Shown here piece by piece: positions 1,888 to 64,000 of a stretch of DNA of 64,000 nt (positions are counted from its first letter, which is position 1; each line of letters starts with the position of its first letter). Under the pieces are notes generated by a model. The model had not been told where the DNA came from. It saw only the letters and a list, made by a program, of their open reading frames with translations, and searched no databases. Source of the stretch: Mobula birostris (taxonomy: Eukaryota); NCBI RefSeq assembly GCF_030028105.1, contig NC_092379.1, positions 21,739,309 through 21,803,308 on the forward strand, written 5' to 3'. Both the position numbers and the translations under genes were made by a program.

Positions 1888-2302
1888 ACCATAAGTTAAG
1901 ATATAGGAACAGAAGCAGACTATTTGGCCCATCGAGTCTATTCCAGCATTTCATCATGGATGATCCATTTCCCCTGAGTCCCAATCACCTGCCTTCTCTC
2001 AGTATCCCATCATGCTCTGAGCCTTCTCCCAGTATCCCATCATGCTCTGAGCCTTCTCCCAGTATCCCATCATGCTCTGAGCCTTCTCCCAGTATCCCAT
2101 CATGCTCTGAGTAATTAAGAGTCTATGATTCTCTTCCTTAAATAAAGCCAATAACTTGGCTGCCACAGCTGTCTGTGGCAATGAATTCCGCAGATTCACC
2201 ACTCTCTGGTGAAAGAGATTCCTGCACCTATCTGTTCTAAATGGATGTTCCTCTATTCTGAGGCTGTGACCTCTGTTCTTAGGCTCCCCCACCATAAGAA
2301 AT
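1888..2302 (-). mobile_element. CR1 LINE 3' fragment
   Basis: Minus ORF 1999..2442 contains RGHSLRIE..PFRTD..RNLFHQRVVNLRNSLPQ (CR1 ORF2 C-terminus); taagaccataag-type tail near 1885-1900. Confidence 0.85.
1991..2110. repeat. Tandem repeat, 4 x 30 bp (gccttctcccagtatcccatcatgctctga)
   Basis: Four contiguous near-identical units; translates as repeated SMMGYWEKAQ on minus. Confidence 0.95.
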
Positions 2303-19615: not shown

Positions 19616-20108
19616 CTAGCAACACTTCTCAAAGTTGCTGGTGAATGCAGCAGGCCAGGCAGCATCTCTAGGAAGAGGTACAGTCGACGTTTCAGTCCGA
19701 GACCCATCGTCAGGACTAACTGAAGGAAGAGTTAGTAAGAGATTTGAGAGGGGGAGGGAGAGATCCAAAATGATAGGAGAAGACAGGAGGGGGAGGGGTG
19801 GAGCCAGGAGCTGGACAGGTGATTGACAAAGGGAATGTGAGAGGATCATGGGACAGGAGGTCCCGGGAGAAAGGCAAGTGAGGGGGTGGGAACCAGAGGA
19901 TGGGCAAGGGGTATAGTCAGAGGGACAGAGGGAGAAAAAGGAGAGTGAGAGAAAGAATGTGTGTATAAAAATAAATAACGGATGGGGTACGAGGGGGAGG
20001 TGGGGCATTAGCGGAAGTTAGAGAAGTCGATGTTCATGCTATCAGGGTGGAGGCTACCCAGACGGAATATAAGGTGTTGTTCCTCCAACTTGAGTGTAGC
20101 TTCATCTT
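19616..20108 (-). mobile_element. Penelope-like element 3' fragment with TSD
   Basis: Matches the end of the GIY-YIG ORF, 3'UTR and HHR of the PLE at 61227-62441; 9 bp TSD tgttttact at 19607-19615 and 20109-20117. Confidence 0.88.
19682..19717 (-). ncRNA. Minimal type I hammerhead ribozyme motif (stem II has a mismatch)
   Basis: agtc CTGACGA t gggtctcggact GAAAC GTC gact. Confidence 0.7.
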
Positions 20109-21740: not shown

Positions 21741-21869
21741 CCTATCATCAGCCTCTGCTTGCTAGCAGTCTCACAAACACTGCCTTTGCTTGTAAGCCAA
21801 CAACTCGACCCTCAGCCTTACCTCTCCATTTAACTCATTATTGATTAAAATTAGAAACTGCAGATAGAT

Positions 21870-22680
21870 CCTTTAAAATTTTTAGGAATTTGGTTTGATA
21901 AAAAACTCACATGGTCAATATTTATTAAAGAAATAATAACCAAAAGTAAGAAAGTAAGGTTAATCAGTGGGGCAATGAGGACAACACCAGTGGTGGCAAT
22001 GGAGGTGGAGTTGGGAGAGACACCTCTGGAACTGAGAAGATCACAGCTTGTGTTAACATATTAGGTAAACGTACAAGGGCCTGGAGAAAATCATCCAAGT
22101 AAACAGCTTTTAGATCGATGCTGGGAAAAGGAAAGAAGGAAATTCAGAAATTTTGCACGGACTATTGAAGGGAAAGCAAAAAGGACAGGAATTAGTAACA
22201 AGGCCCCAAGTGATACAGTGCCTTTTCCTGGGCTGTCTCCATGACTGTGTGAAGCACCAGAGGTGGATCCTAAATTATTCAGAAAGAGATGGAAAAGTAG
22301 AGAAGTCAACTTAAATCAAGATATAGTTGAATGTTATGTAAATAATATTAATTATGGATATTTACAAATTTACACAGATGTTTCAAAAATGGTAATACTG
22401 TGGTAGATTAGGGGTAGGATTGGTAGTGCCTGATTTTAACATGAAAAAGCAGGTGAGGATAAACGATGATTTCTCAGTGTATGCAGGTGAAATGACAGCT
22501 GGACTATTGGCTTTGCAGTGGGTGGAGAAAGTGAGACCATGCGAGTTGTAATATTGTCTGATTCAAGCACAACAATCCGGAGTCTAAAAGATTTACATTC
22601 AGTGGGAAAACCAGAGGTTGTATGTGGGATAATACAAACCTTATTTCAACTTAAAATCGTATCCAGAGAGAAGTGGGGTA
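21870..22680 (+). mobile_element. I/Nimb-clade non-LTR fragment with RNase H
   Basis: GIWFDKKLTW, SGAMRTTPVVAM.VELGETPLELRR, then RNase H acidic triad LQIYTDVSK / SVYAGEM / VILSDSS. Confidence 0.75.
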
Positions 22681-23169
22681 GTTTAGGAATGCACGAAAGA
22701 GTGGGAGGGAGGAGAGATAATATCGAGACTGAGGTTTGAGCACACAGGGTTAAAGTACATTGTTTTTCATAAAGAAACGTAACAATGGGAGGTGTGAATA
22801 TTGTAATCAACAAGACATAATCAAGAGGGGATGGACGATTTAAAAGTTATCTCAATACGATTTAACATTAACAGCATTTTGCAGAAAGGATCAGAGGATT
22901 CTTGCTTAAAATTATAGTTCTGTTACTTCAGAGCACAGATCTTTTTATATAAAATGATATATAAATATGGGGTCAAATATAAATATGTGGGTCATGACAC
23001 GTTGACCCACAGTCCAGTTCAGAAGGGGCGGTAGTGCACCTTAAAAAGGATGTTTGCGAGAGTGTCGGGATGTAAACATACACAGGCCATTCCCACCATA
23101 GGCTGTTTGCCGAAAGAAGAATTATGAGAAGGGAATAACCAAAGTAAATATCAGGAAGATTTGGTGAAC

Positions 23170-23370
23170 CAGACGTCCCACCTTCCGGTTTCTATCCTTG
23201 CCGCCATTGGTTAAAAGGACCGACGGTCTTCCCACCCATCTTTCACGGGATTAGAGAAACATGCAGACCGCCTGTCGCTATTGGTTGCATGGAGGTCCGC
23301 ATGTTCCCACCCATTGGTTTGCGCGCATGGCCGTCATACCACTTGCTCTACCATTGGTCAATTTTTTTTT
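23170..23370 (-). promoter_or_regulatory. CCAAT-box cluster with ETS-like motif, putative Pol II promoter (copy A)
   Basis: ATTGG at 23206, 23280, 23313, 23353, each a/gaCCAAT(g/a)g on minus; CCGGAAG at 23182-23188; non-repeat, visibly CpG-retaining DNA. Confidence 0.6.
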
Positions 23371-23784
23371 AAAAACGTGCGGAGTTGGATCGTATAAAAA
23401 AATTTCGGAAAGATCCATTTGGTTTACAAAATTAAAGTGGATGGATCATCAAAGCAGGAAAATTTTGGAGGTTATAAATTTTATGATTAACCACTGAAAA
23501 CTTTTGGAACAAAAGCGTAGCGGCTCTACGCCTGCGCTGAATTGTGATGTTTACCGGTCATTGCCGTATAAATTATTATTTCCGTACGGTATCTCTGAAG
23601 CCTCGGTGAACATTGGGAGCGAACTTCCCATTTGATGGTCACATGTTCTGATGTTTTGAAAAAAGAAAACGATGTTTCATGGCAGTTGCGATCGTCTTCC
23701 AAATACTGAAATGGAGACTTTAGATACCCAAACGCCCTTGCGCGTAGAACAAGCTCTATCTCGAGTGGAACTGGAGACGAAGTA

Positions 23785-24060
23785 GGGTTGAGACCTTTCA
23801 TGTGGACTGAAAGACAGAGGGGAGGTGACCGGGGTAAAGAGGCGAGGGAAGGGGTAGAGCAGGTGCTGTCAGGTGATAGGGGCCGCCAGGTGAGCGGGTG
23901 GACGGGCGGGTGGGGAATGGAATTGTGGCAAAAGGCTGAAGATAATGGAATCTGATGGGAGAGGAAGGTGGAGCATGAACTAAAGGGAGGGAGGTGCGGA
24001 GGGCAGAGGGGAGTAGACGGAAACCAGTGGGATGAGTGTGTGGGTTGTGTCACGGACTGG
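23785..24060 (-). mobile_element. Old, diverged PLE 3' fragment with decayed HHR; paralog ~43960-44230
   Basis: Purine-rich tract like the PLE 3'UTR; agtccacatgaaaggtctcaaccc on minus is a degenerate HHR. Confidence 0.5.
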
Positions 24061-24137
24061 TATGGAAACACCCTTGAATAGAAAAGCCTACAAAAATGCA
24101 TGGATACAGACTAGATCATCACAGGTAAAGCCCTTGT

Positions 24138-24326
24138 TGTTACTGTGAACGAAGTCACCAGAGAGACAGTGAAGCTGCTGGTGATAGAAGTCTTTATTCA
24201 GCAAAACAAGCAGCGGAGATCATACTCCAGACACTCTTGGAAGAAGAGGCCTGCCTGACCCAATATTACATGACATTTTTATACGCTAAATATGAAACGT
24301 AACAGCAGGACAATGCTGTAGTTACA
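24138..24326 (-). repeat. Solo LTR (189 bp); paralog 44320-44508
   Basis: Minus reads TGTAAC...GAATAAAGAC...GTAACA; flanks ttgt/atgt (imperfect 4 bp TSD). Confidence 0.7.
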
Positions 24327-24477
24327 ATGTTATTTAGAATACTCCCTTTGAATGACATATAATTTTCAAATATCTCCATCTTCACATCCACACTCCATGC
24401 ACATAAAACAAATGTTAATTCCCAGTGACTCTGGACCACATTCATGCACAAGCAGGTATCTGAGGTCGAATTTATCT

Positions 24478-25124
24478 GAGGGCAAGCAGTTATAGTGAGA
24501 GGGACAGAGGGAGAAAAAAGAGAGAGGAAAAAAATAAGTAATAAATAAACAAACAAACAAATAAGGGATGGGAGGTGGGGCATTAACGGAAGTTAGAGAA
24601 GTCAATGTTCATGCCATCAGGTTGGAAGCTACCCAGATGGAATATAAGGTGTTATTCCTCCAACCTGAGTGTGGCTTCATCTTGATAGTAAAGGAGGCCG
24701 TGGATAGACATATCAGAATGAGAATGGGATGTGGAATTAAAATGTGTGGCCACTGGGAGATCCTGCTTTCTCTGGTGGACAGCCTTGCCCATCCTCTGGG
24801 CTCCCCTCCCCCTTTCTTTCTCCCTCGGCCTCCCATCCCCGATCCTCTCCCTTCTCCAGCCTCGTATCCCTTTTGCCAATCAACGTTCCAGCTCTTAGCT
24901 CAATCCCTCCCCCTCCTGTCTTCTCCTATCATTTTGGATCTGCCCCTCCCCCTCCCACTTTCAAATCTCTCACTATCTCTTCTTTCAGTTAGCCCTGACA
25001 AAGGGTCTCAGCCCGAAACGTTGACTGTACCTCTTCCTATTGATGCTGCCTGGTCTGCTGCGTTCACCAGCATTTTTTGTGTGTGTTGCTTGAATTTCCA
25101 GCATCTGCAGATTTCCTCATGTTT
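24478..25124. mobile_element. PLE 3' fragment with 5' inversion; paralog 44653-45298
   Basis: 24478-24782 is minus-strand GIY-YIG end (DLPVATHFNS..EATLRLEE); 24783-25124 is the plus-strand remainder of the 3'UTR with HHR and tail. Confidence 0.85.
24991..25026 (+). ncRNA. Degenerate hammerhead motif (core mutated)
   Basis: agcc CTGACAA agggtctcagccc GAAAC GTT gact; CUGANGA core and GUC triplet altered. Confidence 0.5.
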
Positions 25125-25139
25125 GCAAAAACTTCTGTA

Positions 25140-26836
25140 GTTCTTCCGTGGTGTCTCAGGAAGGCAGAGTCCATTATTAAAGACCTGCAGCACCCAGGGC
25201 TTGCACTTTTCTCACTGCGATCAGAGTCATAGTCATAGTCATACTTTATTGATCCCGGGGGAAATTGGTTTTCATTACAGATGCACCATAAATAATAAAT
25301 AGTAATAGAACCATAAATAGTTAAATAGTAATATGTAAATTATGCCAGTAAATTATTAAATGTCCAGGACCAGCCTATCGGCTCAGGGTTTCTGACCCTC
25401 CAAGGGAGGAGTAGTAAAGTTTGATGGCCACAGGCAGGAATGACTTCCTGTGATGCTCTGTGCTGCATCTCGGAGGAATGAGTCTCTGGCTGAATGTACT
25501 CCTGTGCCCACCCAGTACATTATGTAGTGGATGGGAGACATTGACCAAGATAGCATGCAACTTAGACAGCATCCTCTTTTCAGACACCACTGTGAGAGAG
25601 TCCAGTTCCATCCCCACAACATCACTGGCCTTACGAAAGAGTTTGTTGATTCTGTTGGTGTCTGCTACCCTCAGCCTGCTGACCCAGCACACAACAGCAA
25701 ACATGATAGCACTGGCCACCACAGACTCGTAGAACATCCTCAGCAAAGTCCGGCAGATGTTAAAGGACCTCAGTCTCCTCAGGAAATAGAGACGGCTCTG
25801 ACCCTTCTTGTAGACAGCCTCAGTGTTCTTAGACCGGTCCAGTTTATTGTCAATTCGTATCCACAGGTATTTGTAATCCTCCACCATGTTCACTCTGACC
25901 CCCTGGATGGAAACAGGGGTCACCAGTACCTTATCTCACCTCAGGTCTGCCACCAGCTCCTTAGTCTTTTTCACATTAAGCTGCAGATAATTCTGCTCAC
26001 ACCTTGTGACAAAGTTTCCTACTGTAGACCTGTACTCAACCTCATCTCCCTTGCTGATGCATCCAACTATGGCAGAGTCATCGGAAAACTTCTGAAGATG
26101 ACAAGACTCTGTGTGGTAGTTGAAGTCCGAGGTATAAATGGTGAAGAGAAAGGGAGACAAGACAGTCCCCTGTGGAGCCCCAGTGCTGCTGATCACCCTG
26201 TTGGACACACATTGTTGCAAGCACATGTACTGTGGTCTGCCAGTCAGCTAATCAAGAATCCATGATACCAGGGAAGCATCCACCTGCATCGCTGTCAGCT
26301 TCTCCCCCAGCAGAGCAGGGCAGATGGTGTTGAACGCACCGGAGAAGTCAAAAAACATGACCCCCACAGTGCTCGCTGGCTTGTCCAGGTGGGCGTAGAC
26401 ACGGTTCAGCAGGTAGACGATGGCATCCTCAACTCCTAGTCAGGGCTGGTAGGCGAACTGGAGGGGATCTGAGTGTGGCCTGACCATAGGCCGGAGCAGC
26501 TGTCATCAGGTAGGAGATACAGAAGCCTGAAGGCGCACACTCAGCGATCAGGAACAGCTTCTTCCACTCTGCCATCCGATTCCTAAATGGACATTGAAGC
26601 TTTGGACACTACCTCACATTTTTCATATACAGTATTTTTGTTTTTGCGCATTTTTTAATAATCTATTCAATATACGTAATTGATTTACTTGTTTGTTTAT
26701 TATGTTTTCTTTTATTTATTATTATATTTTTTCTCTCTCTGCTAGATTATGTATTGCATTGAACTGCTGCTGTGAAGATAACAAGTCTCACGTCACATGC
26801 TGGTGATAACAAACCCGATTCTGATTCTGATTCTGA
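25140..26836 (+). mobile_element. Rex1/Babar-type LINE 3' end with (ATTCTG)n tail, interrupted in copy A; uninterrupted paralog ~45299-45706
   Basis: KAESIIKDLQHPGLALFSL / GRRYRSLKAHTQR..NSFF; tail gattctgattctgattctga ends at 26836. Confidence 0.85.
25225..26500 (-). mobile_element. Second Rex1/Babar family, 1.27 kb 3' fragment present only in copy A
   Basis: [42 protein letters not shown]; (ATGACT)n tail; empty site ttctcactgttatcatcagg at ~45360-45380. Confidence 0.9.
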
Positions 26837-28440
26837 ACCGGAGGTGATCAGGGAGTTTAAGGTAAAGAACCCTTAGGAACTAGTGATCACAATGTGATTG
26901 AGATCAACTTGAAATTGGATAGGGAGAAAGTAAAGTCTGACATAGCAATATTTCAGTGGAGTAGGGGAAATTACAGTGGTATGAGGAGTTCACCAATATA
27001 AATTGGAAAGAGCTGCGAGCAGGGATGTCAGCAGAGCAGCAATGCCATGTGTCTCTGGGAAAAGTGAGGAAGGTGCAGGACATGTGTATTCCAAATATGA
27101 AGAAATACTCAAATGGTAAAATAGTACAACTGTGGCTGACGAGGGAATTCAAAGCTGATGTAAAAACAAAAGAGAGGGCATACAACAAAGCGAAATGATT
27201 GGGAAGACAGAGGATTGAGAAGTTTTTAAAAACCTACAGAGAACAATGAAAAGAATCATTAGAAGGGAAAAGATAAAATATAAAAGCAAGCTAAAAATAA
27301 TATCAAAGTGGATAACAAAAGCTTTTTGTAGTATGTAGAAATTAAAAGAGAAATGAGAGTGGAAACAGGACTGCTACAAAATGAGGCAGGAGAAATAATA
27401 ATGGGGAACAAGGAGATGGCAGATGAATTACAAGAAAATTTTGCATCAGTCTTCACTGTGGAAGACACCAGCAGTATGCCTGATGTTGTAGTGTGGGATG
27501 GAAGAGAAGTGGGTGCTGTTACTATTACAAGGGAGAAGGCTGAAGACCTAAAAGATCATAAATCACCCAGACCAGAGAAACTGCACCCTAGCATTCTGAA
27601 AGAGGTTGCATTAGAGATTGTGGTGGCAGTGGAAATGATGCTTCGAAAATCATTGGACTCTGACAAGGTGCCAGAGGACTGGAAAATTGCAAATATCATT
27701 CCACTCTTTAAGAAAGGAGGAAGGCAGCTGAAAGGAAATTATAGACAAGTTAGACTGACCTCAATGATTGGGAGGATGTTCGAGTCAATTGTTAAGGACG
27801 AGGTGACGGAGTACTCGGTGACCCAGGACAAGATAGGACAAAGTCGGCACGGTTTCCATCAGGGAAAACCCTGCCTGACGAACCTGTTGGAATTATTTGA
27901 GGAGATTACAAGTAGGATCGATAAAGGGGATGAAGTGGATGTTGTATATTTGGACTTTCAGAAGGCCTTTGACAAGGTGCCACACATAAGGCTGCTTAGC
28001 AAGTTAAGAGCCCATGGTATTTCAGGAACGTTACTAGGATGGGTAGAGCATTGGCTGATTGGAAGAAGTCAGCGAGTGGGAACAGAAGGATCCTTGGCTG
28101 GTTGGCTGCCAGTGACTAGTGGTGTTCCACAGGGGCAGTGTTGGGCCTACATTTTTTATGCTGTATATAAATGATTTAGATAATGAAACAGATGGCTTTG
28201 TTGCCAAGTTTGCAGATGATACAAAGACTGGTGGAGGAACAGGTAGTGTTGAGGAAACTAGTATGATGAAGAAGGACAGACGGATTTGGGGAATGGGCGA
28301 GAAAGTGGCCAATGAAATATAATGGAGGAAAATGAATGATCATGCACTTTGGTTGGAGAAATAAATGTGTGGAGTATTTTCTAAACAGGGAGAAAATCCA
28401 AAAATCTGAGATGAAAGGGACTTGTGAGGCCTTTTGCAGA
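26837..28440 (+). mobile_element. CR1 LINE internal fragment with deletions; paralog ~45707-47295
   Basis: ORF 27353..28174: PEDWKIANIIPLFKKG, YLDFQKAFDKVPH, TSGVPQG. Confidence 0.9.
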
Positions 28441-33511: not shown

Positions 33512-33563
33512 CAAAGTTGCTGGTCAATGCAGCAGGCCAGGCAGCATCTTTAGGAAGAGGTGT

Positions 33564-33599
33564 AGTCGACGTTTCAGGCCGAGACCCTTCGTCAGGACT
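33564..33599 (-). ncRNA. Minimal type I hammerhead ribozyme motif, intact core
   Basis: agtc CTGACGA a gggtctcggcct GAAAC GTC gact. Confidence 0.85.
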
Positions 33600-34593
33600 A
33601 ACTGAAGGAAGAGTGAGTAAGAGATTTGAAAGTGGGAGGGGGAGGGGGAGATCCAAAATGATAGGAGAAGACAGGAGGGGGATGGATGGAGCCAGGAGCT
33701 GGACAGGTGATTGGCAAAAGGGATACGAGAGGATCATGGGTCAGGAGGTCCGGGAAGCAAGAGAAGGCGGGGGGAACCCAGAGGATGGGCAAGGGGTATA
33801 TTCAGAGGGACAGAGGGAGAAAAAGGAGAGTGAGAGAAAGAATGTGTGTATAAAAATAAGTAACAGATGGGGTTCGAGGGGGAGGTGGGGCATTAGCGGA
33901 AGTTAGAGAAGTCGATGTTCATGCCATCAGGTTGGAGGCTACCCAGACGGAATATAAGGTGTTGTTCCTCCAACCTGAGTGTGGCTTCATCTTTACAGTA
34001 GAGGAGGCCGTGGATAGACATGTCAGAATGGGAATGGGATGTGGAATTAAAATGTGTGGTCACTGGGAGATCCTGCGTTCTCTGGCGGACAGAGCGTAGG
34101 TGTTCAGCAAAGCGGTCTCCCAGTCTGCGTCGGGTCTCGCCAATATATAAGAGGCCACATCGGGAGCTTCGGACGCAGCAACTTTGATGTGTGTTGCTTA
34201 AATTTACAGCATCTGCAGAATTCCTGTTGTTACCAGCAACCTTGATGTGTGTTGCTTAAAATTACAGCATCTGCAGAATTCCTGTTGTTCTGATGGCATG
34301 AACATCGACTTCTCTAACTTCCGCTAATGCCCCACCTCCCCCTCGTACCCCATCTGTTACTTATTTTTATTCACACATTCTTTCTCTCACTCTCCTTTTT
34401 CTCCCTCTGTCCCTCTGAATATACCCCTTGCCCATCCTCTGGGTTCCCCCCCCGACCTGTCCTCTCGTATCCCTTTTACCAAATACCTGTCCAGCTCCTG
34501 GCTCCATCCCTCCCCCTCCTGTCTTCTCCTATCATTTTCGATCTCCCCCTCCCCCTCCCACTTTCAAATCCCTTACTCACTCTTCCTTCAGTT

Positions 34594-34629
34594 AGTCCTG
34601 ACGAAGGGTCTCGGCCTGAAACGTCGACT
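34594..34629 (+). ncRNA. Minimal type I hammerhead ribozyme motif, intact core
   Basis: agtc CTGACGA a gggtctcggcct GAAAC GTC gact; identical to the copy at 33564-33599. Confidence 0.85.
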
Positions 34630-34692
34630 GCACCTCTCCCTAGAGATACTGCCTGGCCTGCTGCGTTCAGCAGCATCTTTGATGTGTGTTGC

Positions 34693-38723: not shown

Positions 38724-39644
38724 AGCTTCCACTGCTTCATTAGGCATTGAATTCACAGAGATTCACCACTCTCTGGGATAAACAGTTCCTCCTCATTTCC
38801 ATCCTAAATCTACTCCCCCAAATCTTGAGGCTGCGTCCCCAAGTTCAATCCCATCAGTGTGATTGTACCCTGCCTGTTCTTGAGTTTCACTCAAATGGAC
38901 TCAGTTTCTGACCTCGCCATTATGTCTCCTCTGCGTGCAGCTGTGATATTGTCCCTGACTGTTAATGCAATACCCCCACTTTATCTCCTCCTCTATCTTT
39001 TCTAAAACTTCAAAAACCTGGTACATTAATCACCCATTTCTGCCCCTCACTCAACCAAATTTCAGTAATGGCTACAACATTGTAGTTCCATGTACTGATC
39101 CATGCTCTCATTTCATCACCCTTAACCGTAATACTCCTTGGTATACCCTGAATTATTCTACACCTTCCCATCCTATGTCACCTCTTTCGAATGATTTCAT
39201 TTAATTTTTTGCCAACACAGGCACACCACAATTTTTTTGCCAACACAGGCACACCTCGCCTTCTGCCAACCTGCCTGTCCTTTCGATACAATGTGTATCC
39301 CTGGATATCAAGCTCCCAACTATAATCTTCTTTCAGCCATAATTCAGTGATGCCCACACTGTCATACATGCCAATCTGTAGCTGTGCTACAAGTTAATCT
39401 ATCTTATTCTGTATACTGTCTGAATTCAAAGATAACACTTTCAATCCAGTCTTCATCACCTTTTTTTGATTTTTGGCCCCCTTTTGCATCCCATTGACTG
39501 CAGTTTTGCCCTGTCATCAGCCTCTACTTGCCAGCAGTCTCACTAAAGACTGCCTTTGTTTGAAAATCAACAACTCGATCCTCAGCCTTATCTCTACATT
39601 TAATTGATTATCAATTAAAATTAGAAACTGCAGACCCTTTTAAA

Positions 39645-40440
39645 TTTTTAGGAATTTGGTTTGATAAAAAAACTCACATGGTCAACATGTATTAAAGAAA
39701 TAAAAACCCAAAGTAAGAAAGTAAGGTTAATCAGTGGGGCAATGAGGACAACACCAGTGGTGGCAATGCAGGTGGAGTTGGGAGAGACACCTCTGGAACT
39801 GAGAAGATCACAGCTTGTGTTAACATATTGGGTAAATGTACAAGGGCCTGGAGAAAATCATCCAAGTTAACAGGTTTTAGATCGATGCTGGGAAAAGGAA
39901 AGAAGGAAATTAAGAGATTTTGCACGGACTATTGAAGGGAAAGCAGAAATGACAGGAATTAGTAATAAGGCCCTGAGTGATACAGTGTCTTTTCCTGGGC
40001 TGACTCCATGACTGTGTGAAGCACCAGAGGTGGATCCTACATTATTCAGAAAGAGATGGAAAAGTAGAGAAGTCTACTTAAATCAAGATATAGTTGAATG
40101 TTATGTAAATAATAATAATTAGGGATATTTACAAATTTACACAGATGTTCAAAAACGGTAACACTGTTGTAGATTAGGGGTAGGATTGGTAGTGCCTGAT
40201 TTTAACATGAAAATGCAGGAGAGGATAAATGATGATTTCTCAGTGTATACAGGTGAAATGACAACTGGACTATTGGCTTTGCAGTGGGTGGAGAAAATGA
40301 GACCATGCGAGTTGTAATATTGTCTGATTCAAGCATAACAATCCAGAGTCTAAAAGATTTGCATTCAGTGGGAAAACCAGAGGTTGTATGTGGGATAATA
40401 CAAACCTTATTTCAATTTAAAATGGTATCCAGAGAGAAGT
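39645..40440 (+). mobile_element. I/Nimb-clade fragment with RNase H (copy B)
   Basis: ORFs 39661 (SGAMRTTPVVAMQVELGETPLELRRSQL) and 40284 (VVILSDSS); tacacagatg (YTD) at ~40138. Confidence 0.75.
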
Positions 40441-40525
40441 GGGGTAGTTTAGGAATGCAGGAAAGAGTAGGAAGGAGGAGGTTATAATATCGAGACTGAG
40501 GTTTGGGCACGCAGGGTTAAAGTAC

Positions 40526-40627
40526 CATACATCAAAGTTGCTGATGAATGCAGCAGGCCAGGCAGCATCTCTCGGAGGAGGTACAGTCGACGTTTCGGGC
40601 CGAGACCCTTCGTCAGGACATTGTACG
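40526..40627 (-). mobile_element. ~100 bp HHR-containing mini-PLE insertion with 12 bp TSD
   Basis: TSD gggttaaagtac at 40514-40525 and 40628-40639; single-copy empty site at 22747-22758. Confidence 0.9.
40585..40619 (-). ncRNA. Minimal type I hammerhead ribozyme motif, intact core
   Basis: gtc CTGACGA a gggtctcggccc GAAAC GTC gact. Confidence 0.85.
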
Positions 40628-40847
40628 GGGTTAAAGTACATTGTTTTTTATAAAGAAACACAACAATGGGAGGTGTGAATATTGTAATCAACAAGACATA
40701 ATCAAGAGGGGATGGACGATTTAAAAGTTATCTCAATACGATTTAACATTAACAGCATTTTGCAGGAAGGATCAGAGGATTATTGCTTTAAATAATAGTT
40801 CTATTACATCAGAGCACAGATCTTTTTATATAAAAATGATATATAAA

Positions 40848-43102
40848 TGATAGTGGGTGAGGATCTGGGGGACAGTGACCACCGCTCCCTGGCCTTTATA
40901 ATTATCATGGAAAAGGATAGAATCAAACGGACAGGAAAATTTTTAATTGGGGAAAGGCAAATTATGAGGCTATAAGGCTAGAACTTGCAGGTGTGAATTG
41001 GGATGACGTTTTTGCAGGGAAATGTACTATGGACATGTGGTCGATGTTTAGAGATCTCTTGCGGGATGTAAGGGATAAATTTGTCCCGGTGAGGAAGATA
41101 AAGAATGGTAGGGTGAAGGAACCATGGGTGACAAGTGAGGTGGAAAATCTAGTCAGGAGGAAGAAGGCAGCATACATGAGGTTTAAGAAGCAAGGATCAG
41201 ATGGGTCTATTGAGGAATATAGAGAAGCAAGAAAGGAGCTTAAGAAGGGGCTGAGAAGAGCAAGAAGGGGGCATGAGAAGGCCTTGGCGAGTAGGATAAA
41301 GGAAAACCCCAAGGCGTTCTTCAATTATGTGAAGAAAAAAAGGATGACAGGAGTGAAGGTAGGACCGATTAGAGATAAAGGTGGGAAGATGTGCCTGGAG
41401 GCTGTGGAAGTGAGCGAGGTCCTCAATGAATACTTCTGTTCGGTATTCACCAATGAGAGGGAACTTGATGATGGTGAGGACAATATGAGTGAGGTTGATG
41501 TTCTGGATCATGCTGATATTAAGGGAGAGGAGGTGTTGGAGTTATTAAAATACATTAGGACAGATAAGTCCCCGGGGCCTGACGGAATATTCCCCAGGCT
41601 GCTCCACGAGGTGAGAGAAGAGACTGCTGAGCCTCTGGCTAGAATCTTTATGTCCTCATTGTCCACGGGAATGGTACTGGAGGATTGGAGGGAGGTGAAT
41701 GTTGTTCCCTTGTTCAGAAAAGGTAGTAGGGATAGTCCGGGTAATTATACACCAGTGAGCCTTACGTCTGTGGTGGGAAAGCTCTTGGAAAAGATTCTTA
41801 GAGATAGGATCCATAGGCATTTAGAGAATCATGGTCTGATCAGAGACAGTCAGCTTGGCTTTGTGAAGGGCAGATCGTGTCTAACAAGCCTGATGGAGTT
41901 CTTTGAGGAGGTGACCAGGCATACAGATGAGGGTAGTGCAGTGGATGTGATCTATTTGGATTTTAGTAAGGCATTTGACAAGGTTCCACACGGTAGGCTT
42001 ATTCAGAAAGTTAGAAGGCATTGCATCCAGGGAAGTTTGGCCAGGTGGATTCAGAATTGACTTGCCTGCAGAAGGCAGAGGGTGGTGGTGGAGGGAGTAC
42101 ATTCAGATTGGAGGATTGTGACTAGTGGTGTCCCACAAGGATCTGTTCTGGGACCTCTACTTTTCGTGATTTTTATTAACGACCTGGATGTCGGGGTAGA
42201 AGGGTGGGTTGGCAAGTTTGCAGACGACACAAAGGTTGGTGGTGTTGTAGATAGTGTAGAGGATTGTCGAAGATTGCAGAGAGACATTGATAGGATGCAG
42301 AAGTGGGCTGAGAAGTGGCAGATGGAGTTCAACCCGGAGAAGTGTGAGGTGGTACACTTTGGAAGGACAAACTCCAAGGCAGAGTACAAAGTAAATGGCA
42401 GGACACTTGGTGGTATGGAGGAGCAGAGGGATCTCGGGGTACATGTCCACAGATCCCTGAAAGTTGCCTCACAGGTGGATAGGGTTGTTAAGAAAGCTTA
42501 TGGGGTGTTAGCTTTCATAAGTCGAGGGACAGAGTTTAAGAGTAGCCATGATGCAGATGCAGCTCTATAAAAGTCTGGTTCGGCCACACTTGGAGTACTG
42601 TGTCCAGTTCTGGTCACCTCACTATAGGAAGGATGTGGAAGCATTGGAAAGGGTACAGAGGAGATTTACCAGGATGTTGCCTGGTTTAGAAAGTATGCAT
42701 TATGATCAGAGATTAAGGGAGCTCGGGCTTTACTCTTTGGAGAGAAGGAGGATGAGAGGAGACATGATAGAGGTGTACAAGATAATAAGAGGAATAGATA
42801 GAGTGGATAGCCAGCGCCTCTTCCCCAGGGCACCACTGCTCAATACAAGAGGACATGGCTTTAAGGTAAGGGGTGGGAAGTTCAAGGGGGATATTAGAGG
42901 AAGGTTTTTTACTCAGAGAGTGGTTGGTGCATGGAATGCACTACCTGAGTCAGTGGTGGAGGCAGATACACTAGTGAAGTTTGAGAGACTGCTAGTCAGG
43001 TATATGGAGGAATCTAAGGTGGGGGCTTATATGGGAGGCAGGGTTTGAGGGTCGGCAGAACATTGTGGGCCAAAGGGCCTGTACTGTGCTGTACTATTCT
43101 AT
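40848..43102 (+). mobile_element. Young CR1 LINE, 2.25 kb, 5'-truncated; ORF2 broken by one stop and one frameshift
   Basis: ORFs 40993..42060 (355 aa), 42082..42570, 42548..43048; tail ctattctat runs into the gap; absent from copy A at ~22966. Confidence 0.95.
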
Positions 43103-43349
43103 NNNNNNNNNNNNNNNNNNNNNNNNNNNNNNNNNNNNNNNNNNNNNNNNNNNNNNNNNNNNNNNNNNNNNNNNNNNNNNNNNNNNNNNNNNNNNNNNNN
43201 NNNNNNNNNNNNNNNNNNNNNNNNNNNNNNNNNNNNNNNNNNNNNNNNNNNNNNNNNNNNNNNNNNNNNNNNNNNNNNNNNNNNNNNNNNNNNNNNNNNN
43301 NNNNNNNNNNNNNNNNNNNNNNNNNNNNNNNNNNNNNNNNNNNNNNNNN
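43103..43349. other. Assembly gap (247 N)
   Basis: Run of n characters. Confidence 1.
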
Positions 43350-43540
43350 ACCTTCCGGTTTCTATCCTTGCCGCCGTTGGTTAGAAGGACCGACGGTCCT
43401 CCCACCCATCTTTCACGGGATTAGAGAAACATGCAGACCGCCTGTCGCTATTGGTTGATTGGTGGTCCGCACGTTGCCACCCATTGGTTTGCGCGCATAG
43501 CCATCATACGACGTGCTCTACCATTGGTCAAGTTTTTGTT
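43350..43540 (-). promoter_or_regulatory. CCAAT-box cluster, putative promoter (copy B)
   Basis: ATTGG at 43450, 43458, 43483, 43523; first A-copy box mutated to GTTGG; CCGGAAG retained. Confidence 0.55.
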
Positions 43541-45164
43541 TAAAAACGTGCTGAGGTTGAATCGCATGAAAACATTTCGGAAAGGTCCATTTTGTACACA
43601 AAATTAAAGTGGATGGTTCATCAAAGCTGTAAAATTTTGGAGGTTATAAATTTTATGATTGAACACAGAAAACTTTGGGAACAAAAGCGTAGCAGCCTTA
43701 CGCCTGCACCGAATGGTGATGTTTACCGGTCATTGCCGTATAAATTATTATTTCCGTACGGTATCTCTGAAGTCTTGGGGAACATTGGGAACGAATTTGC
43801 TATTTCACGGTCACATGCTTTGATGTTTTGAAAAAAGAAAACTATGCTTAATGGCAGTTGCGATCGTCTTTCAAATAATGAAATGGAGACATGTCCTACC
43901 CAAACGCCCGTGCGCTTAGAATAAGCTCTATCTCGAGTGGAACTGGCGACGTTGCGTAACAGGTTGAGATCTTTCATGTGGACTGAAAGACAGAGGGGAG
44001 GTGACCGGGGTAAAAAGGCGAGGGAAGGGGTAGAGCAGGTGCTGTCAGGTGATAGGGGCCGCCAGGTGAGCGGGTGGACAGGCGGATGGGGAATGGAATT
44101 CTGGCAAAAGGCTGAAGATAATGGAATCTGATGGGAGAGGAAGGTGGAGCATGAACTAAAGGGAGGGAGGTGCGGAGGGCAGAGGGGAGTAGTGGGGACG
44201 GAAACCAGTGGGATGAGTGTGTGGGTTGTGTCACGGACTGGTATAGGAAACACCCTTGAATAGAAAAGCCTACAAAAATGCATGGATACAGACTAGATCA
44301 TCACAGGTAAAGCCCTTGTTGTTACTGTGAACGAAGTCACCAGAGAGACAGTGAAGCTGGTGGTGATAGAAGTCTTTATTCAGCAAAACAAGCAGCAGAG
44401 ATCATACTCCAGACACTCTTGGAAGAAGAGGCCTGCCTGACCCAATATTACATGACATTTTTATATGCTAAATATGAAACGTAACAGCAGGACAATGCTG
44501 TAGATACAATGTTATTCAGAATGCTCCCTTTGAAAGACATATAATTTTCAAATACCTCCATCTTCACATCCATGCACATAAAACAAATGTTAATTCCCAG
44601 TGACTCTGGACCACATTCATGCACAAGCAGGTATCTGAGGTTGAATTTATCTGAGGGCAAGCAGTTATAGTGAGAGGGACAGAGGGAGAAAAAAGAGAGA
44701 GAGGAAAAAAATAAGTAATAAATAAACAAACAAACAAATAAGGGATGGGAGGTGGGGCATTAACGGAAGTTAGAGAAGTCAATGTTCATGCCATCAGGTT
44801 GGAAGCTACCCAGATGGAGTATAAGGTGTTATTCCTCCAACCTGAGTGTGGCTTCATCTTGATAGTAAAGGAGGCCGTGGATAGACATATCAGAATGAGA
44901 ATGGGACGTGGAATTAAAATGTGTGGCCACTGGGAGATCCTGCTTTCTCTGGTGGACAGCCTTGCTTATCCTCTGGGTTCCCTCCCCCTTTCTTTCTCCC
45001 TAGGCCTCATGTCCCCTGATCCTTTCCCTTCTCTGGCCTCGTATCCCTTTTGCCAATCAACTTTCCAGCTCTTAGCTCAATCCCTCCCCCTCCTGTCTTC
45101 TCCTATCATTTCGGATCTCCCCCTCCTCCCACTTTCAAATCTCTCACTATCTCTTCTTTCAGTT

Positions 45165-45200
45165 AGCCCTGACGAAGTGTCTCAACCCAAAACGTCGACT
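45165..45200 (+). ncRNA. Degenerate hammerhead motif (GAAA to AAAA)
   Basis: agcc CTGACGA agtgtctcaaccc AAAAC GTC gact; paralog of 24991-25026. Confidence 0.5.
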
Positions 45201-48200
45201 GTACCTCTTCCTATAGATGCTGCCTGGTCTGCTGCGTTCACCAGCATTTTTTGTGTGTGTTGCTTGAGTTTCCAGCATCTGCAGGTTTCCTCGTGTTTCT
45301 GTGGTGTCTCAGGAAGGCAGCATCCATTATTAAAGACCTGCAGCACCCAGGGCTTGCACTTTTCTCACTGTTATCATCAGGAAGGAGATACAGAAGCCTG
45401 AAGGCACACACTCAGCGATTCAGGAACTGCTTCTTCCACTCTGCCGTCCGATTCCTAAATGGACATTGAAGCTTTGGACACTACCTCACTTTTTCATATA
45501 CAGTATTTCTGTTTTTGCTCATTTTTTAATAATCTATTCAATATACGTAATTGATTTACTTGTTTGTTTATTATGTTTTATTTTATTTATTATTATATTT
45601 TTTCTCTCTCTGCTAGATTATGTATTGCATTGAACTGCTGCTGTGAAGATAACAAGTTTCATGTCACATGCTGGTGATAACAAACCCGATTCTGATTCTG
45701 ATTCTGAGCCGGAGGTGATCAGGGAGTTTAAGGTAAAGAACCCTTAGGAACTAGTGATCACAATGTGATTGAGATCAACTTGAAATTGGATAGGGAGAAA
45801 GTAAAGTCTGACATAGCAATATTTCAGTGGAGTAGGGGAAATTACAGTGGTATGAGGAGTTCGCCAAAATAAATTGGAAGGAGCTGCGAGCAGGGATGTC
45901 AGCAGAGCAGCAATGTCATGTGTTTCTGGGAAAAATGAGGAAGGTGCAGGACATGTGTATTCCAAATATGAAGAAATACTCAAATGGTAAAATAGTACAA
46001 CTGTGGCTGACGAGGGAATTCAAAGCTGATGTAAAAACAAACGAGAGGGCATACAACAAAGCGAAATGATTGGGAAGACAGAGGATTGAGAAGTTTTTAA
46101 AAACCTACAGAGAACAATGAAAAGAATCATTAGAAGGGAAAAGATAAAATATAAAAGCAAGCTAACAGTAATATCAAAGTGGATAGCGAAAGCTTTTTCT
46201 AGTATGTAGAAATTAAAAGAGAAATGAGAGTGGATATAGGACCACTACCAAATGAGGCAGGAGAAGTAATAATGGGGAACAAGGAGATGGCAGGTGAATT
46301 AAATGAAAATTTTGCATCAGTCTTCACTGTGGAAGACACCAGCAGTATGCCTGATGTTGTAGTGTGGGAAGGAAGAGAAGTGGGTGCTGTTACTATTACA
46401 AGGGAGAAGGCTGAAGACCTAAAAGATCATAAGTCACCCAGACCAGAGAAACTGCACCCTAGCGTTCTGAAAGAGGGAGCAGTAGAGATTGTGGTGGCAG
46501 TGGAAATGATCCTTCGAAATGGCATGGTGCCAGAGGACTAGAAAATTGCAAATGTCACTCCACTCTTTAAGAAAGGAGGAAGACAGCAGAAAGGAAATTA
46601 TAGACAAGTTAGCCTGACCTCAATGGTTGGGAAGATGTTCGAGTCAATTGTCAAGGATGAGGTGACGGAATACTCGGTGACCAAGGACAAGATAGGACAA
46701 AGTCAGCGCGGTTTCCATCAGGGAAAACCCTGCCTGACAAACCTGTTGGAATTCTTTGAGGAGATTACAAGTAGGATGGATAAACGGGATGTAGTGGATT
46801 TTGTATATTTGGACTTTCAGAAGGCCTTTTACAAGGTGCCACACATGAGGCTGCTTAGCAAGTTAAGAGCCCATGGTATTTCAGGAATGTTACTAGGATG
46901 GTTGGAGCATTGGCTGATTGGAAGAAGTCAGCGAGTGGGAATAAAAGTGGCCTGGGCTGGTTGGCTGCCAGTGACTAGTGGTGTTCCGCAGGGGTCAGTG
47001 TTGGGCCCACATTTTTTATGCTGTATATAAATGATTTAGATAACGAAATAGATGGCTTTGTTGCCAAGTTTGCAGATGACACAAAGACTGGTGGAGGAAC
47101 AGGTAGTGTTGAGGAAACGGGTATGATGCAGAAGGACAGACGGATTTGGAGAATGGGCGAGAAAATGTCAAATGAAATATAATACTGGAAAATGAATGAT
47201 CATGCACTTTGGTAGTAGAAATAAATGTGTGGAGTATTTTTGAAATAGAGAAAATCCAAAAATCTGAGATAAAAGGGACTTGAAGGGCCTTTTGCAGAAC
47301 ACCCTATAACCATATAACAATTACAGCACGGAAACAGGCCATCTCGGTCCTTCTCGTCCATGCCAAACGCTTACTCTCACCTCGTCCCACCGACCTGCAC
47401 TCAGCCCATAACCCTCCATTCCTTTCCTGTCCATATACCTATCCAATTTTGCTTTAAATGACAATATCGAACCTGCCTCTACCACTTCTACTGGAAGCTC
47501 ATTCCACACAGCCACCACTCTCTGAGTAAAGAAGTTCCCCATCGTGTTACCCCTAAACTTTTGCCCCCTAACTCTCAACTCATGTCCTCTTGTTTGAATC
47601 TCTCCTACTCTCAATGGAAAAAGCTTATCCACATCAACTCTATCTGTCCCACTCATAATTTTAAATACCTCTATCAAGTCCCCCCTCAACCTTCTACGCT
47701 CCAAAGAATAAAGACCTAACTTGTTCAACCTTTCTTTGTAAATCAGGTGCTGAAACCCAGGTAACATTCTACTAACTCTTCTCTGTACTCTACTCAGTGC
47801 TCTGATTTATGAAGGCCAGCATACCAAAAGCTTTCTTCACCACCCTATCCACATGAGATTCTACCTTCAGGGAACTATGCACGATTATTCCTGGATCACT
47901 CTGTTCTACTGCATTCTTCAATGCCGTACCATTTACCATGTATGCCCCATTTTGATTACTCCTACCAAAATATAAAGGTTAACTTTCAAGCAAGTCAGGT
48001 CAAGTCACTTTTTATTGTCATTTCGACCATAACTGCTAGTACAGTACCCAGTTAAAACAAGACAACGTTTTTCAGGACCATGGTGCTACATGAAACAATA
48101 CAAAAACTACAGTGAACAAGGTAAAACAACACAAAAACTACACTAGACTACAGATCTACCCAGGACTGCATAAAGTGCAGAAAACAGTGCGGGCATTACA

Positions 48201-61226: not shown

Positions 61227-62441
61227 TCTGCTCTCAGGATGAGGCTTTTCATTCTAGGACAAGGGAGATGTCCTCCTTTTTTAAAGAAAGGGGCTTCCCT
61301 TCCCCCACTATCAACTCTGCTCTTAAACGCATCTCCCCCATTTCACGTACATCTGCTCTCACTCCATCCTCCTGCCACCACACTAGGAATAGGGTTCCCC
61401 TGGTCGTCACCTACCACCCCACCAGCCTCCGGGTCCAACATATTACTCTTCGTAACTTCCGCCACCTCCAATGGGATCCCACCACTAAGCACGTCTTTCT
61501 CTCCCCACCCTCTGTGCTTTCCTCAGGGATCACGCCCTACGCGACTCCCTTGTCCATTCGTCCCCCCCATCCCTCCCCACTGATCTCCCTCCTGGCACTT
61601 ATCCGTGTAATCGGAACAAGTGTTACACATGCCCTTACACTTCCTCCCTTACCACCATTCAGGGCCCCAAACAGTCCTTCCAGGTGAGGCGACACTTCAC
61701 CTGTGAGTCGGCTGGGGTGATATACTGCGTCCGGTGCCCCCGATGTGGCCTTTTATGCATTGGCGAGACCCGACGCAGACTGGGAGACCGCTTTGCTGAA
61801 CACCTACGCTCTGTCCGCCAGAGAAAGCAGGATCTCCCAGTGGCCACACATTTTAATTCCACATCCCATTCCCATTCTGACATGTCTATCCACGGCCTCT
61901 TCTACTGTAAAGATGAAGCCACACTCAGGTTGGGGGAACAACACCTTATATTCCGTCTTGGTAGCCTCCAACCTGATGGCATGAACATCGACTTCTCTAA
62001 CTTCCGCTAATGCCCCACCTCCCCCTCGTACCCCATCTGTTACTTATTTTTATACACACATTCTTTCTCTCACTCTCCTTTTTCTCCCTCTGTCCCTCTG
62101 AATATACCCCTTGCCCATGCTCTGGGTGCCCCCCCTCATTTTCTTTCTTCCCGGACCTCCTGTCCCATGATCCTCTTGTATCCCTTTTGCCAATCACCTA
62201 TGCAGCTCTTGGCTCCATCCCTCCCCCTCCTGTCTTCTCCTATCATTTTGGATCTCTCCCTCCCCCTCCAACTTTCAAATCTCTTACTCACTCTTCCTTC
62301 AGTTAGTCCTGACGAAGGGTCTCGGCCTGAAACTTCGACTGCACCTCTTCCTGGAGATGCTGCCTGGCCTGCTGCATTCACCAGCGACTTTGGTGTGTGT
62401 TGCTTGAATTTCCAGCATCTGCAGAATTCCTGTTGTTTGCG
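61227..62441 (+). mobile_element. Penelope-like element, 5'-truncated (RT C-terminus, GIY-YIG endonuclease, 3'UTR with HHR), 10 bp TSD
   Basis: VIYCVRCPRCGLLCIGETRRRLGDRFAEH (61684..62010); RVPLVVTYHP; TSD cctataatca at 61217-61226 and 62442-62451. Confidence 0.93.
62305..62340 (+). ncRNA. Hammerhead motif with stem III substitution
   Basis: agtc CTGACGA agggtctcggcct GAAAC TTC gact (GTC to TTC). Confidence 0.6.
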
Positions 62442-62991
62442 CCTATAATCACCAAGATCCTTTTCTGTAGTGAATACTGAAGCTAAGTATTCATTAAGTA
62501 CCTGTGCTATTTCCTCCGGTTCCATACACACTTTCCCACTGTCACACTTGATAGGTCCTATTCATTCACGTCTTATCCTCTTGCTCTTCACATACTTGTA
62601 GAATGCCTTGGGATTTTCCTTAATCCTGCCCGCCAAGGCCTTCTCATAGCCCCTTCTGGCTCTCCTAATTTCCTTCTTAAGCTCTTTCCTGTTAGTCTTA
62701 TAATCTTCTAGATCTCTAACATTACCTAGCTCTCTGAACCTTTCATAAGCTTTTCTTTTCTTCTTGACTAGATTTACTGCAGCCTTTGTACACCACGGTT
62801 CCTGTACCCTACCATAACTTCCCTGTCCCATTGGAATGTACCTATGCAGAACTCTACACAAATATCCCCTGAACATTTGCCACATTTCTTCCATACCTTT
62901 CCCGAGAACATCTGTTCCCAATTTAAGCTTCCAAGTTCCTGCCTGATAACCTCCTAATTCTCCTTACTCCAATTAAACACTTTTCTAACTT

Positions 62992-63088
62992 GCAACACAC
63001 ATAAAAGTTGCTGGTGAACGCAGCAGGCCAGGCAGCATCTTCTAGGAAGAGGTGCAGTCGACGTTTCAGGCTGAGACCCGTCGTCAGG
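62992..63088 (-). mobile_element. 97 bp HHR-containing mini-PLE insertion with 13 bp TSD
   Basis: TSD acttttctaactt at 62979-62991 and 63089-63101; CR1 continues on both sides. Confidence 0.9.
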
Positions 63089-63091
63089 ACT
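63056..63091 (-). ncRNA. Minimal type I hammerhead ribozyme motif, intact core
   Basis: agtc CTGACGA c gggtctcagcct GAAAC GTC gact. Confidence 0.8.
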
Positions 63092-64000
63092 TTTCTAACT
63101 TTTTCCTTTTTCTCGCCAATACTATTGTAAATGAGATAGAATAATGATCACTATCTCCAAAATGCTCTCCCACTGAGAGATCTGACACCTGACCAGGTTC
63201 ATTTCCCAATACCAAATCAAGTAGTCTCTCCTCTTGTAGGCTCATCTACATATTGTGTCTAGAAACCCTCCTGAACACACCTAACAAACTACACCCCATT
63301 TAAACCCTTTGCTCTGGGGAGATGCCAATCGATATTTGGGAAATTAAATCAACCACCACGACAACTATGTTATGATTACACCTTTCCAGGATCTGTTTCC
63401 CTACCTGCTCCTCGATATCCCTGTTATTATTGGGTGACCGAAAAAAACACCCAGTAGAGTTATTGACCCCTTCCTGTTCCTAACTTCCATCCACAGAGAC
63501 TCCGTAGACAATCCCTCCATGACATCCACCTTTTTTGCAACCGTGACACTATCTCTGATCAACAGTGCCACGCCCTCACCTCTTTTGCCTCCCTCCCTGT
63601 CCTTTCTGAAACATCTAAAACCCGGCACTTGAAGTAACCATTCCTGTCCCTGAACCATCCAAGTCTCTGTAATGGCCAACATATCATAGCTCGAAGTACT
63701 GATCCACGCTCTAAGCTCATCCGCTTTGTTCACAATACTTCTTTCATTAAAATAGACACATCTCAAACTGTCGGTCTGAGTGCGTCCCTTCTCTATCACC
63801 TGCCTTTCCTCCCTCACACACTGTCTCCAAGCTTTCTCTATTTGTGAGCCAATCGCCTCTTCCCCAGTCTCTTCAGTTCGGTTCCCACCCCCGAAAAATT
63901 CTAGTTTAAACTCTCCCCAGTAGCCTTAGCAAACCTCCCCGCCAGGGTAATAGTCCCCTGGGATTCAAGTGCAACCTGTCATTTTTGTACAGGTCACACC

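Follow-up and report, generated by a model that had tools for sequence, protein, structure and literature searches.

Two short insertions in the DNA analysed here raise the question of why copies of a retroelement should begin at the first bases of a ribozyme that the element carries. The window, the whole stretch of 64,000 nucleotides under analysis, holds two solo copies (c1 and c2) composed of a hammerhead and the adjoining 3' tail of a Penelope-like element (PLE). The original prediction described c1 as only a hammerhead and ~60 nt of PLE tail, bounded by a perfect 13-bp TSD and starting at stem I, and c2 as starting at the same point within a different TSD. It held further that random 5' truncation would rarely give such a shared start and that self-cleavage does not explain it, and offered as causes either a discrete mini-element or a stop of the reverse transcriptase (RT) at the ribozyme fold.

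Two short hammerhead insertions and their parent element

The description of c1 was confirmed by repeat analysis and by comparison with the parent element (Table 1). On the minus strand the c1 hammerhead reads AGTC CTGACGA ... GAAAC GTC|GACT, in which sequence inspection identifies helix I (AGTC/GACT) followed by CTGACGA, a GC-rich helix II, GAAAC and GTC. Since AGT at 63091-63089 supplies both the first three bases of c1 and bases of the TSD, a microhomology of 3 nt, the start of c1 is uncertain by 3 nt. The host DNA belongs to an unrelated repeat that bears an RT, present here as an old copy (62448-62986 against 41472-40933, 68%). The c1 TSD also matches the PLE ORF end at 13 of 14 positions, once in every long copy, a likeness treated as coincidence.

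The account of c2 held equally well: its start lies 0-2 nt from that of c1, both starts being 31-32 nt upstream of the predicted GUC cleavage site, and it has its own 12-bp TSD. The tail of c2 stops about 4 nt before the c1 tail end. The flanks of c2 (39500-40525 and 40625-40848) match 21731-22758 and 22744-22966 at 93-95% and, since this paralogous segment keeps an uninterrupted site, c2 is a proven insertion. The 8-nt filler at its 5' junction is found in neither the empty site nor the parent element, and its last base is not G. Both c1 and c2 are true insertions, each with its own TSD. Over the stretch in common, c1 shares 92-93% identity with the long copies c5 and c6, compared with 87% for c2; when these two short copies were compared with the long ones, no private substitutions common to c1 and c2 were found.

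Table 1. Positions of the insertions, of their parent copies and of the 5' junctions at helix I (window coordinates).
Feature	Position	Strand	Remarks
c1 mini-insertion	62992..63091 (63091->62992), 100 nt	-	hammerhead and short tail between 13-bp TSD copies
c1 hammerhead	63091-63056	-	predicted cleavage between 63060 and 63059
c1 short tail	63055-62992	-	final letters GTGTTGC; length given as 63 nt
c1 TSD, element 3' side	62979-62991		perfect 13-bp direct repeat acttttctaactt
c1 TSD, element 5' side	63089-63101		perfect 13-bp direct repeat acttttctaactt
c2 mini-insertion	40526..40619 (40619->40526), 94 nt	-	starts at G of GTCCTGACGA (GTCC)
c2 predicted cleavage	between 40589 and 40588	-	
c2 TSD, first copy	40514-40525		12-bp repeat GGGTTAAAGTAC
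c2 TSD, second copy	40628-40639		12-bp repeat GGGTTAAAGTAC
c2 5'-junction filler	40620-40627, 8 nt		ATTGTACG on + strand
c2 empty (pre-insertion) site	22747-22758		uninterrupted, in paralogous segment 21731-22966
c3, long copy	19616..20108	-	5' truncated within ORF end; 9-bp TSD TGTTTTACT; short-tail 3' end
c4/c5, head-to-head pair	33512..34692	c4 -, c5 +	c4 34178->33512; c5 34290-34692
Two tandem 56-nt tail units	34176-34289		between c4 and c5
c6, long 5'-truncated PLE copy	61489..62440	+	reference; longest copy; start approximate
c6 ORF stop codon	62008-62010	+	followed by pyrimidine-rich 3' UTR
c6 hammerhead	62305-62340	+	helix I from A62305; predicted cleavage 62336/62337
c6 tail ends	short near 62403; long at 62438/9	+	
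c7, inverted 5' segment	24480..25126	+	24480-24782 is the reverse complement of the stretch normally upstream of 24783-25126
c8	44655-45298		c7 paralogue through segmental duplication
5' junctions at first helix I base	62305 (A)		X1, 236 contigs; X3, 316 contigs
5' junctions at second helix I base	62306 (G)		X1, 127 contigs; X3, 129 contigs
5' junctions at third helix I base	62307 (T)		X1, 73 contigs; X3, 98 contigs

A BLAST search of the window with the 100-mer revealed eight copies, six of which extend further upstream. In the longer copies the end of a GIY-YIG endonuclease ORF is followed by a 3' UTR of ~300-310 nt, the hammerhead and the tail. Since c7 and c8 are paralogues through a segmental duplication (20971-25223 against 38724-45376), the window holds seven independent insertions. 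Two of the seven start at the ribozyme, so that within the window alone the start shared by c1 and c2 is only suggestive.

The ORF end, present in c6 and c4, carries a GIY...YIG block and reads ...YIGETRRRLGDRFAEHLRSV...EQHLIFRLGSLQP..., the latter being the C-terminal motif. The Pfam GIY-YIG model matched it below the cut-off (E = 0.053, 14.3 bits against 22.6). The closest proteins, at 55-77% identity, are from skate, stingray and sevengill shark, and one relative of the ORF end has a precomputed RT domain; an RT part in intact frame was absent from the 64-kb window. The insertions show TSDs of 13, 12 and 9 bp, an empty site, 5' truncation, and inverted or partial-tandem 5' arrangements, all traits of PLE insertion. 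Judged by these sequence features, the parent of c1 and c2 is a PLE of a cartilaginous fish. The copies resemble published 5'-truncated copies of Penelope, Poseidon and Neptune in the GIY-YIG ORF end, the minimal hammerhead in the terminal repeat, the AT-rich targets, the variable TSDs and the two alternative 3' ends 35 nt apart, corresponding to an optional 'tail' of 30-40 bp (PMC8557442, PMC11167929). Inverted and partial-tandem 5' arrangements, as in c7/c8 and c4/c5, are likewise described (PMC8557442).

A search for the hammerhead core pattern returned 5 matches in the window compared with 0 in 100 shuffles. The features of a minimal type I hammerhead (both cores, helices I and II, the cleavage triplet and the palindrome) could be read directly in c1-c5, and cofolding predicted a hammerhead dimer in which the palindrome replaces helix III. 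Rfam returned no ribozyme family at gathering thresholds for the whole window or at E <= 10 for 62150-63150, probably the result of models that expect helix III. Because the minimal motif escapes the Rfam models, the hammerhead call rests on the features of published descriptors. The minimal type I hammerheads of PLEs (Cervera and de la Pena 2014; Lunse et al. 2017) have the same CUGANGA and GAAA cores, the same 4-bp helix I and a helix II that is rich in GC and has an unpaired base on its 5' side; they also lack helix III, contain a dimer-capable palindrome (ACGU within GTCGAC) and occur mostly as single dispersed motifs. Such single motifs were ascribed to truncated PLEs (PMC4209133) and their start points were left undescribed in both papers. 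The ribozyme region of c6 is predicted to form a closed hairpin, and the CU-rich RNA upstream of 62305 to be unstructured. The 35-nt extension of the tail is complementary to the stretch directly after the ribozyme and, therefore, the long tail is predicted to fold as one long hairpin.

5' junctions at helix I across the genome

In order to map 5' starts beyond the window, Logan contigs (de Bruijn assemblies) from runs X1 and X3 of two organisms, which may be close relatives and one of which could be the source of the window, were aligned to c6 at a likeness of at least 80%. The family proved extremely abundant: 173,055 and 200,728 contigs fitted a 716-nt stretch of c6, counts that are not genomic copies and that within one run are a lower bound. 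It was essentially absent from raw-read runs X21 and X22, which come from other organisms. For the junctions, a stretch of 186 nt (62200-62385) was used and an edge effect at 62203 was set aside; a 5' junction was scored where contigs fit from a base onward with unrelated letters upstream. All such positions among those listed fall on helix I and are its first three bases, 62305, 62306 and 62307. Together they account for 436 contigs in X1 and 543 in X3, or 28-29% of all partly fitting contigs. The other ~230 positions per run average 2-3 contigs, and the weakest helix I position is ~35-fold higher. The sizes of the three classes decrease in the order A > G > T. A profile of word depth was unusable as a test for a step, since depth peaks over the conserved ribozyme core.

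The upstream parts of the 62305-62307 contigs have a median length of 109-255 nt and agree with one another at 0.33-0.39, compared with 0.39 for unrelated 3' flanks. In the classes at 62306 and 62307, which together number 200 contigs in X1 and 227 in X3, the flanks are long and AT-rich and lack a consensus, like target DNA. The flanks of the 62305 class show a CT-rich consensus that resembles the parent's own upstream region, and a mirror peak behind 62340/62341 (324 and 400 contigs) shows the clear consensus of another subfamily. Since the 62305 consensus resembles the parent and the effect of a conserved island is seen at 62340/1, part of the 62305 class represents diverged subfamilies rather than truncation.

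Taken to its limit, this effect would leave no special boundary at all: the starts of c1 and c2 would be due to chance or microhomology, and the contig peak to an alignment artefact of the ribozyme as a conserved island among diverged PLE families. The island effect is real, as the 62305 consensus and the 62340/1 peak show, only two of the seven independent copies in the window begin at this point, and c1 has its microhomology. However, the 62306 and 62307 classes stand ~35-fold or more above ordinary positions with flanks that lack a consensus, which is hard to explain as subfamily divergence on the sequences compared, and c2 has a proven empty site and no microhomology. We regard this explanation as very improbable. 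The 3-nt agt microhomology cannot explain the peak because unrelated flanks are found at c2 and in hundreds of contigs, in agreement with the view that the shared boundary goes beyond it. Genome-wide, 5' junctions have a hot spot at the start of helix I that goes far beyond chance. The plot of 5' starts proposed as a check of the boundary thus gave a sharp peak on the first three bases of stem I, not a smooth distribution, and the argument against random 5' truncation is supported.

Hammerhead cleavage was rejected as the source of the boundary, as originally argued. The predicted site lies 31-32 nt inside the element and no 5'-junction peak was found there, 62337 being absent from the positions and loose ends listed. 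In R2 and L1Tc, too, the inserted copy opens with the first base of a self-cleaving fold, that of an HDV-like ribozyme. The boundary there follows from cleavage at the ribozyme's own 5' edge; in a type I hammerhead the cut falls near the 3' side, and the boundary described here therefore needs another cause.

Two 3' ends and the origin of the 5' boundary

The 3' ends of the copies fall into two groups. In one, c1, c3 and c5 stop at GTGTTGC or close to it (position 62403 of c6), with c2 and c4 stopping a few bases sooner; in the other, c6-c8 extend to 62438-62440. Genome-wide, the commonest 3' break points are 62438 and 62439 (733 and 837 contigs), with AT-rich, unrelated flanks, and the junction contigs at 62305-7 amount to about 0.6 times those at the main 3' end. 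Counted from the AUG-equivalent (A62312, in the CUGANGA core), the 3' ends near 62403 and 62438/9 lie at about +92 and +127. The purified protein of the Anolis Poseidon element initiates reverse transcription internally at two adjacent sites, separated by a 34-nt 'tail' from about +85 to +119 (PMC11167929), a two-site pattern that is matched by the element from cartilaginous fish. The same in vitro work found that RNA from +20 to +172 is enough as template, that hammerhead cleavage is dispensable and that no reads end at the cleavage site (PMC11167929).

Since internal initiation by a PLE reverse transcriptase is published, a third mechanism can be considered in addition to the mini-element and the RT stop. 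We tentatively favor, at a little less than an even chance, an enzyme that starts internally at the tail and, at helix I, reaches a discrete 5' end of the RNA and runs off, leaving leader-only insertions. According to this proposal, c1 and c2 would be target-primed insertions made by the PLE reverse transcriptase and endonuclease, and complete cDNAs of a very short template stretch. The enzyme would bind just downstream of the ribozyme and begin some 90 nt downstream of its core, at the tail site, copy through the ribozyme and run off the RNA at A62305, the first base of helix I. An enzyme engaged at the 5'-proximal start site of the mRNA would produce an insertion of ~100 nt (short tail) or ~134 nt (long tail) instead of a full copy, and such leader-only insertions would keep normal TSDs and normal 3' ends. 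The pile-up of junctions would then mark the RNA 5' end, which may arise in either of two ways. It may be the PLE transcript's own end, with transcription starting at TTA(+1)GTCC, or it may be processed or trimmed to a limit set by the closed ribozyme fold. The lack of a private c1/c2 lineage, as far as the sequences go, fits repeated by-products of different source copies.

Three weak clues fit an RNA end, possibly a capped one. The initiator consensus YYANWYY occurs at 7 of 448 positions of the UTR and tail, one of which is exactly 62305 (TTA(+1)GTCC). Rearrangement joints 62415->62305, 62375->62304 and 62342->62306 have only G or GG between the two sides, and reverse transcriptases leave extra bases of the G or GG type at capped RNA ends; against this, the c2 filler ends in another base. 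The third clue is the fall in class size from A through G to T. A more specific proposition, which we consider rather doubtful, is that the first base of the hammerhead is the capped 5' end of the PLE mRNA; with internal starts about 90-130 nt downstream, the enzyme would often copy no more than this leader, and mini-insertions would make up perhaps a fifth or more of the family's insertions. Penelope of D. virilis, the only PLE with a mapped start, is transcribed from a point some 121 nt upstream of the ribozyme, and its 75-nt intron stops at the 5' edge of helix I (PMC2377424, PMC4209133); an element whose transcription began exactly at helix I would depart from that arrangement. By analogy, retroviral minus-strand strong-stop DNA and run-off L1 copies with an extra 5' G may be compared with the present case, in which the short cDNA itself is proposed to be integrated.

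The stop of the RT at the ribozyme fold, offered in the original prediction, was not borne out. A classical structure-induced stop is expected at the 3' side of the fold, and no 5'-end peak was found at that edge (about 62341) among the positions listed; no structure is predicted for the RNA upstream of 62305. A related alternative is a hot spot of template switching or dissociation on a longer RNA, which the PLE enzyme would leave just after copying the ribozyme, the cDNA then being joined to the target. Possible causes are a roadblock on the CU-rich tract, formed by an enzyme dimer or a host protein, or the architecture of a ribozyme-tail RNP. The boundary coincides with the edge of the region bound and needed by the Anolis enzyme (PMC11167929), a long pyrimidine tract lies directly upstream, and the recurrent joints at 62304-62306 together with the twice-used jump of the 56-nt units (34176-34289) show preferred switch points. 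The lack of predicted structure upstream of 62305 and of a peak 3' of the ribozyme nevertheless counts against a hot spot as well, and no such stop appears in the published in vitro work (PMC11167929); we consider this alternative unlikely.

The window likewise gave no support to a discrete self-propagating element, that is, a non-autonomous unit of ~100-134 nt, SINE-like or a monomer of a non-LTR retrozyme, with sources of its own and a borrowed PLE enzyme. PLE-derived non-LTR retrozymes of vertebrates, with consensus lengths of 51 to 972 bp (98 bp in coelacanth), occur as dispersed monomers (bioRxiv 10.64898/2026.07.22.740005), the joint 62415->62305 is evidence of tandem copies of the unit, and the 0.6-fold ratio of 62305-7 junctions to main 3' ends is in keeping with an abundant unit of this kind. 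However, c1 is closer to the long copies than to c2 and the two share no private substitutions, weak evidence from two copies that leaves a separate lineage unsupported by their sequences. Both are solo insertions with TSDs and not tandem, and among the joints listed none exceeds 5 contigs compared with hundreds of solo junctions. The marks of a SINE are diagnostic substitutions of its own and an internal polymerase III promoter or a tRNA, 7SL or 5S head; no such substitutions were found in these two copies, nor, by inspection, convincing A and B boxes, and the mini-copies have nothing upstream of the putative start. The non-LTR retrozymes (Cervera and de la Pena 2020; Li et al. 2026 preprint) are alike in being short non-coding hammerhead units from PLE terminal repeats, with dispersed monomers and lengths that include about 100 bp. 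Their defining traits are tandem arrays and circular RNAs with limits set by the cleavage site, whereas c1 and c2 are solo copies flanked by TSDs, start 31-32 nt upstream of that site and show no lineage of their own, tandem unit joints being rare genome-wide. This origin is quite unlikely.

A splicing boundary was also considered, in which an intron would end just upstream of helix I and the mini-copies would come from RNA, spliced or processed in part, with the ribozyme at the start of its second exon. The parent has a branch-point-like TACTCAC, a pyrimidine tract and CAG at 62300-62302, so that in c6 a sequence resembling a 3' splice site ends 2 nt before helix I, and a second AG lies at 62305-62306. 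In D. virilis the intron stops where helix I begins (PMC4209133). Against this, a search of the c6 3' UTR revealed no GTRAG or other convincing 5' splice site, a second exon is not set free by normal splicing, exon-1 sequence is missing between the TSD and the ribozyme of c1, and the flanks at the 62306/62307 junctions are AT-rich and unrelated. Splicing is, on these grounds, a very improbable source of the boundary.

Relation to published PLEs and significance

Truncation of PLEs is described as frequent, though not as site-specific, whereas here a large share of the 5' ends falls on three adjacent bases of helix I and, unlike published truncations, the product is a discrete one of ~100 or 134 nt. 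Neither leader-only insertions nor a 5' boundary fixed at helix I were described in the collection of full-text papers searched.

The short and long tails reproduce, independently in a cartilaginous fish, the two internal starts seen in vitro for the lizard element. For annotation, the results indicate that many of the 'single hammerheads' in this genome are discrete insertions of ~100-134 bp and not random debris. The boundary singles out the ribozyme's opening base as a reference point on the template RNA or within the copying complex, which bears on how PLEs, for which one enzyme has been reconstituted in vitro (2024), copy themselves and on the role of their universally conserved hammerhead. 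If the first base of the hammerhead is indeed the capped end of the mRNA, the mini-insertions would be an in vivo footprint of internal initiation, and genome sequence alone would show where the template RNA has its 5' end.

Tail structure and sequence flanking the ribozyme

In the reference Penelope-like element (PLE) copy, c6, the 35-nt extension that separates the long tail from the short tail is complementary to the stretch directly after the ribozyme (62351-62425), where GAGATGCTG pairs with CAGCATCT. Since the two stretches are complementary, the long-tail form is predicted to fold as a single long hairpin. The short tail ends at the 3' base of the apical stem-loop of that hairpin (GCAAC...GTTGC). 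The tandem units lying between two longer PLE copies (Table) are each equivalent to 62382-62437, with the short tail's final ~22 nt followed by the extension, and one jump point was used two times. The use of an identical jump point twice suggests repeated template switching onto the 3' region of the RNA.

Alignment of assembled contigs to 62340-62389 revealed an abundant second PLE subfamily that has the ribozyme in common and diverges right after it, with the consensus TTTATTCCTTTCCATAGATGCTGCCTGACC directly following the ribozyme and a tail that is also divergent (…GCTGAGTTCCTCCAGCA). Upstream, the sequence adjoining helix I (62282-62306) reads TACTCAC, a pyrimidine tract and CAG, resembling the 3' end of an intron; the intron of Drosophila virilis Penelope likewise ends at helix I (PMC4209133). 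The PLE 3' UTR yielded no 5' splice site.

Target site of the c1 mini-insertion

The target site of c1, an insertion of PLE hammerhead and short tail only, is identical at 13 of 14 bases (62979-62991) to the last PLE ORF codons (GACTTCTCTAACTTC, 61990-62003), a match also present in five other long copies and in opposite orientation relative to the element. The likeness was treated as coincidence, although PLE sequences have been reported as homing targets of PLE enzymes.

Other retroelements, duplication and inverted segments

Features of the window
Feature	Position	Remark
ORFs with RT, RNase H and integrase domains	2279-4014	minus strand
RVT_1 ORF	8399-9106	
RVT_1 ORF	27353-28174	
RVT_1 ORF	40993-42570	
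Two tandem 56-nt units	34176-34289	between head-to-head c4 and c5
Segmental duplication	20971-25223 and 38724-45376	92-95% identity
N gap	43103-43349	inside RT-bearing repeat
c7, inverted ~300-bp 5' segment	within 24480-25126	
c8, inverted ~300-bp 5' segment	within 44655-45298	

The minus-strand ORFs are the remnant of an LTR retrotransposon. The second copy of the duplication acquired the mini-insertion c2 (99 bp with filler counted) and also an RT-bearing repeat of ~2.5 kb (40849-43349). The inversion junction in the long PLE copies c7 and c8 has an 8-bp overlap, and the pattern resembles that of L1 twin priming. Extension of both target strands by a PLE enzyme has been reported, and the inversion pattern fits such an activity.
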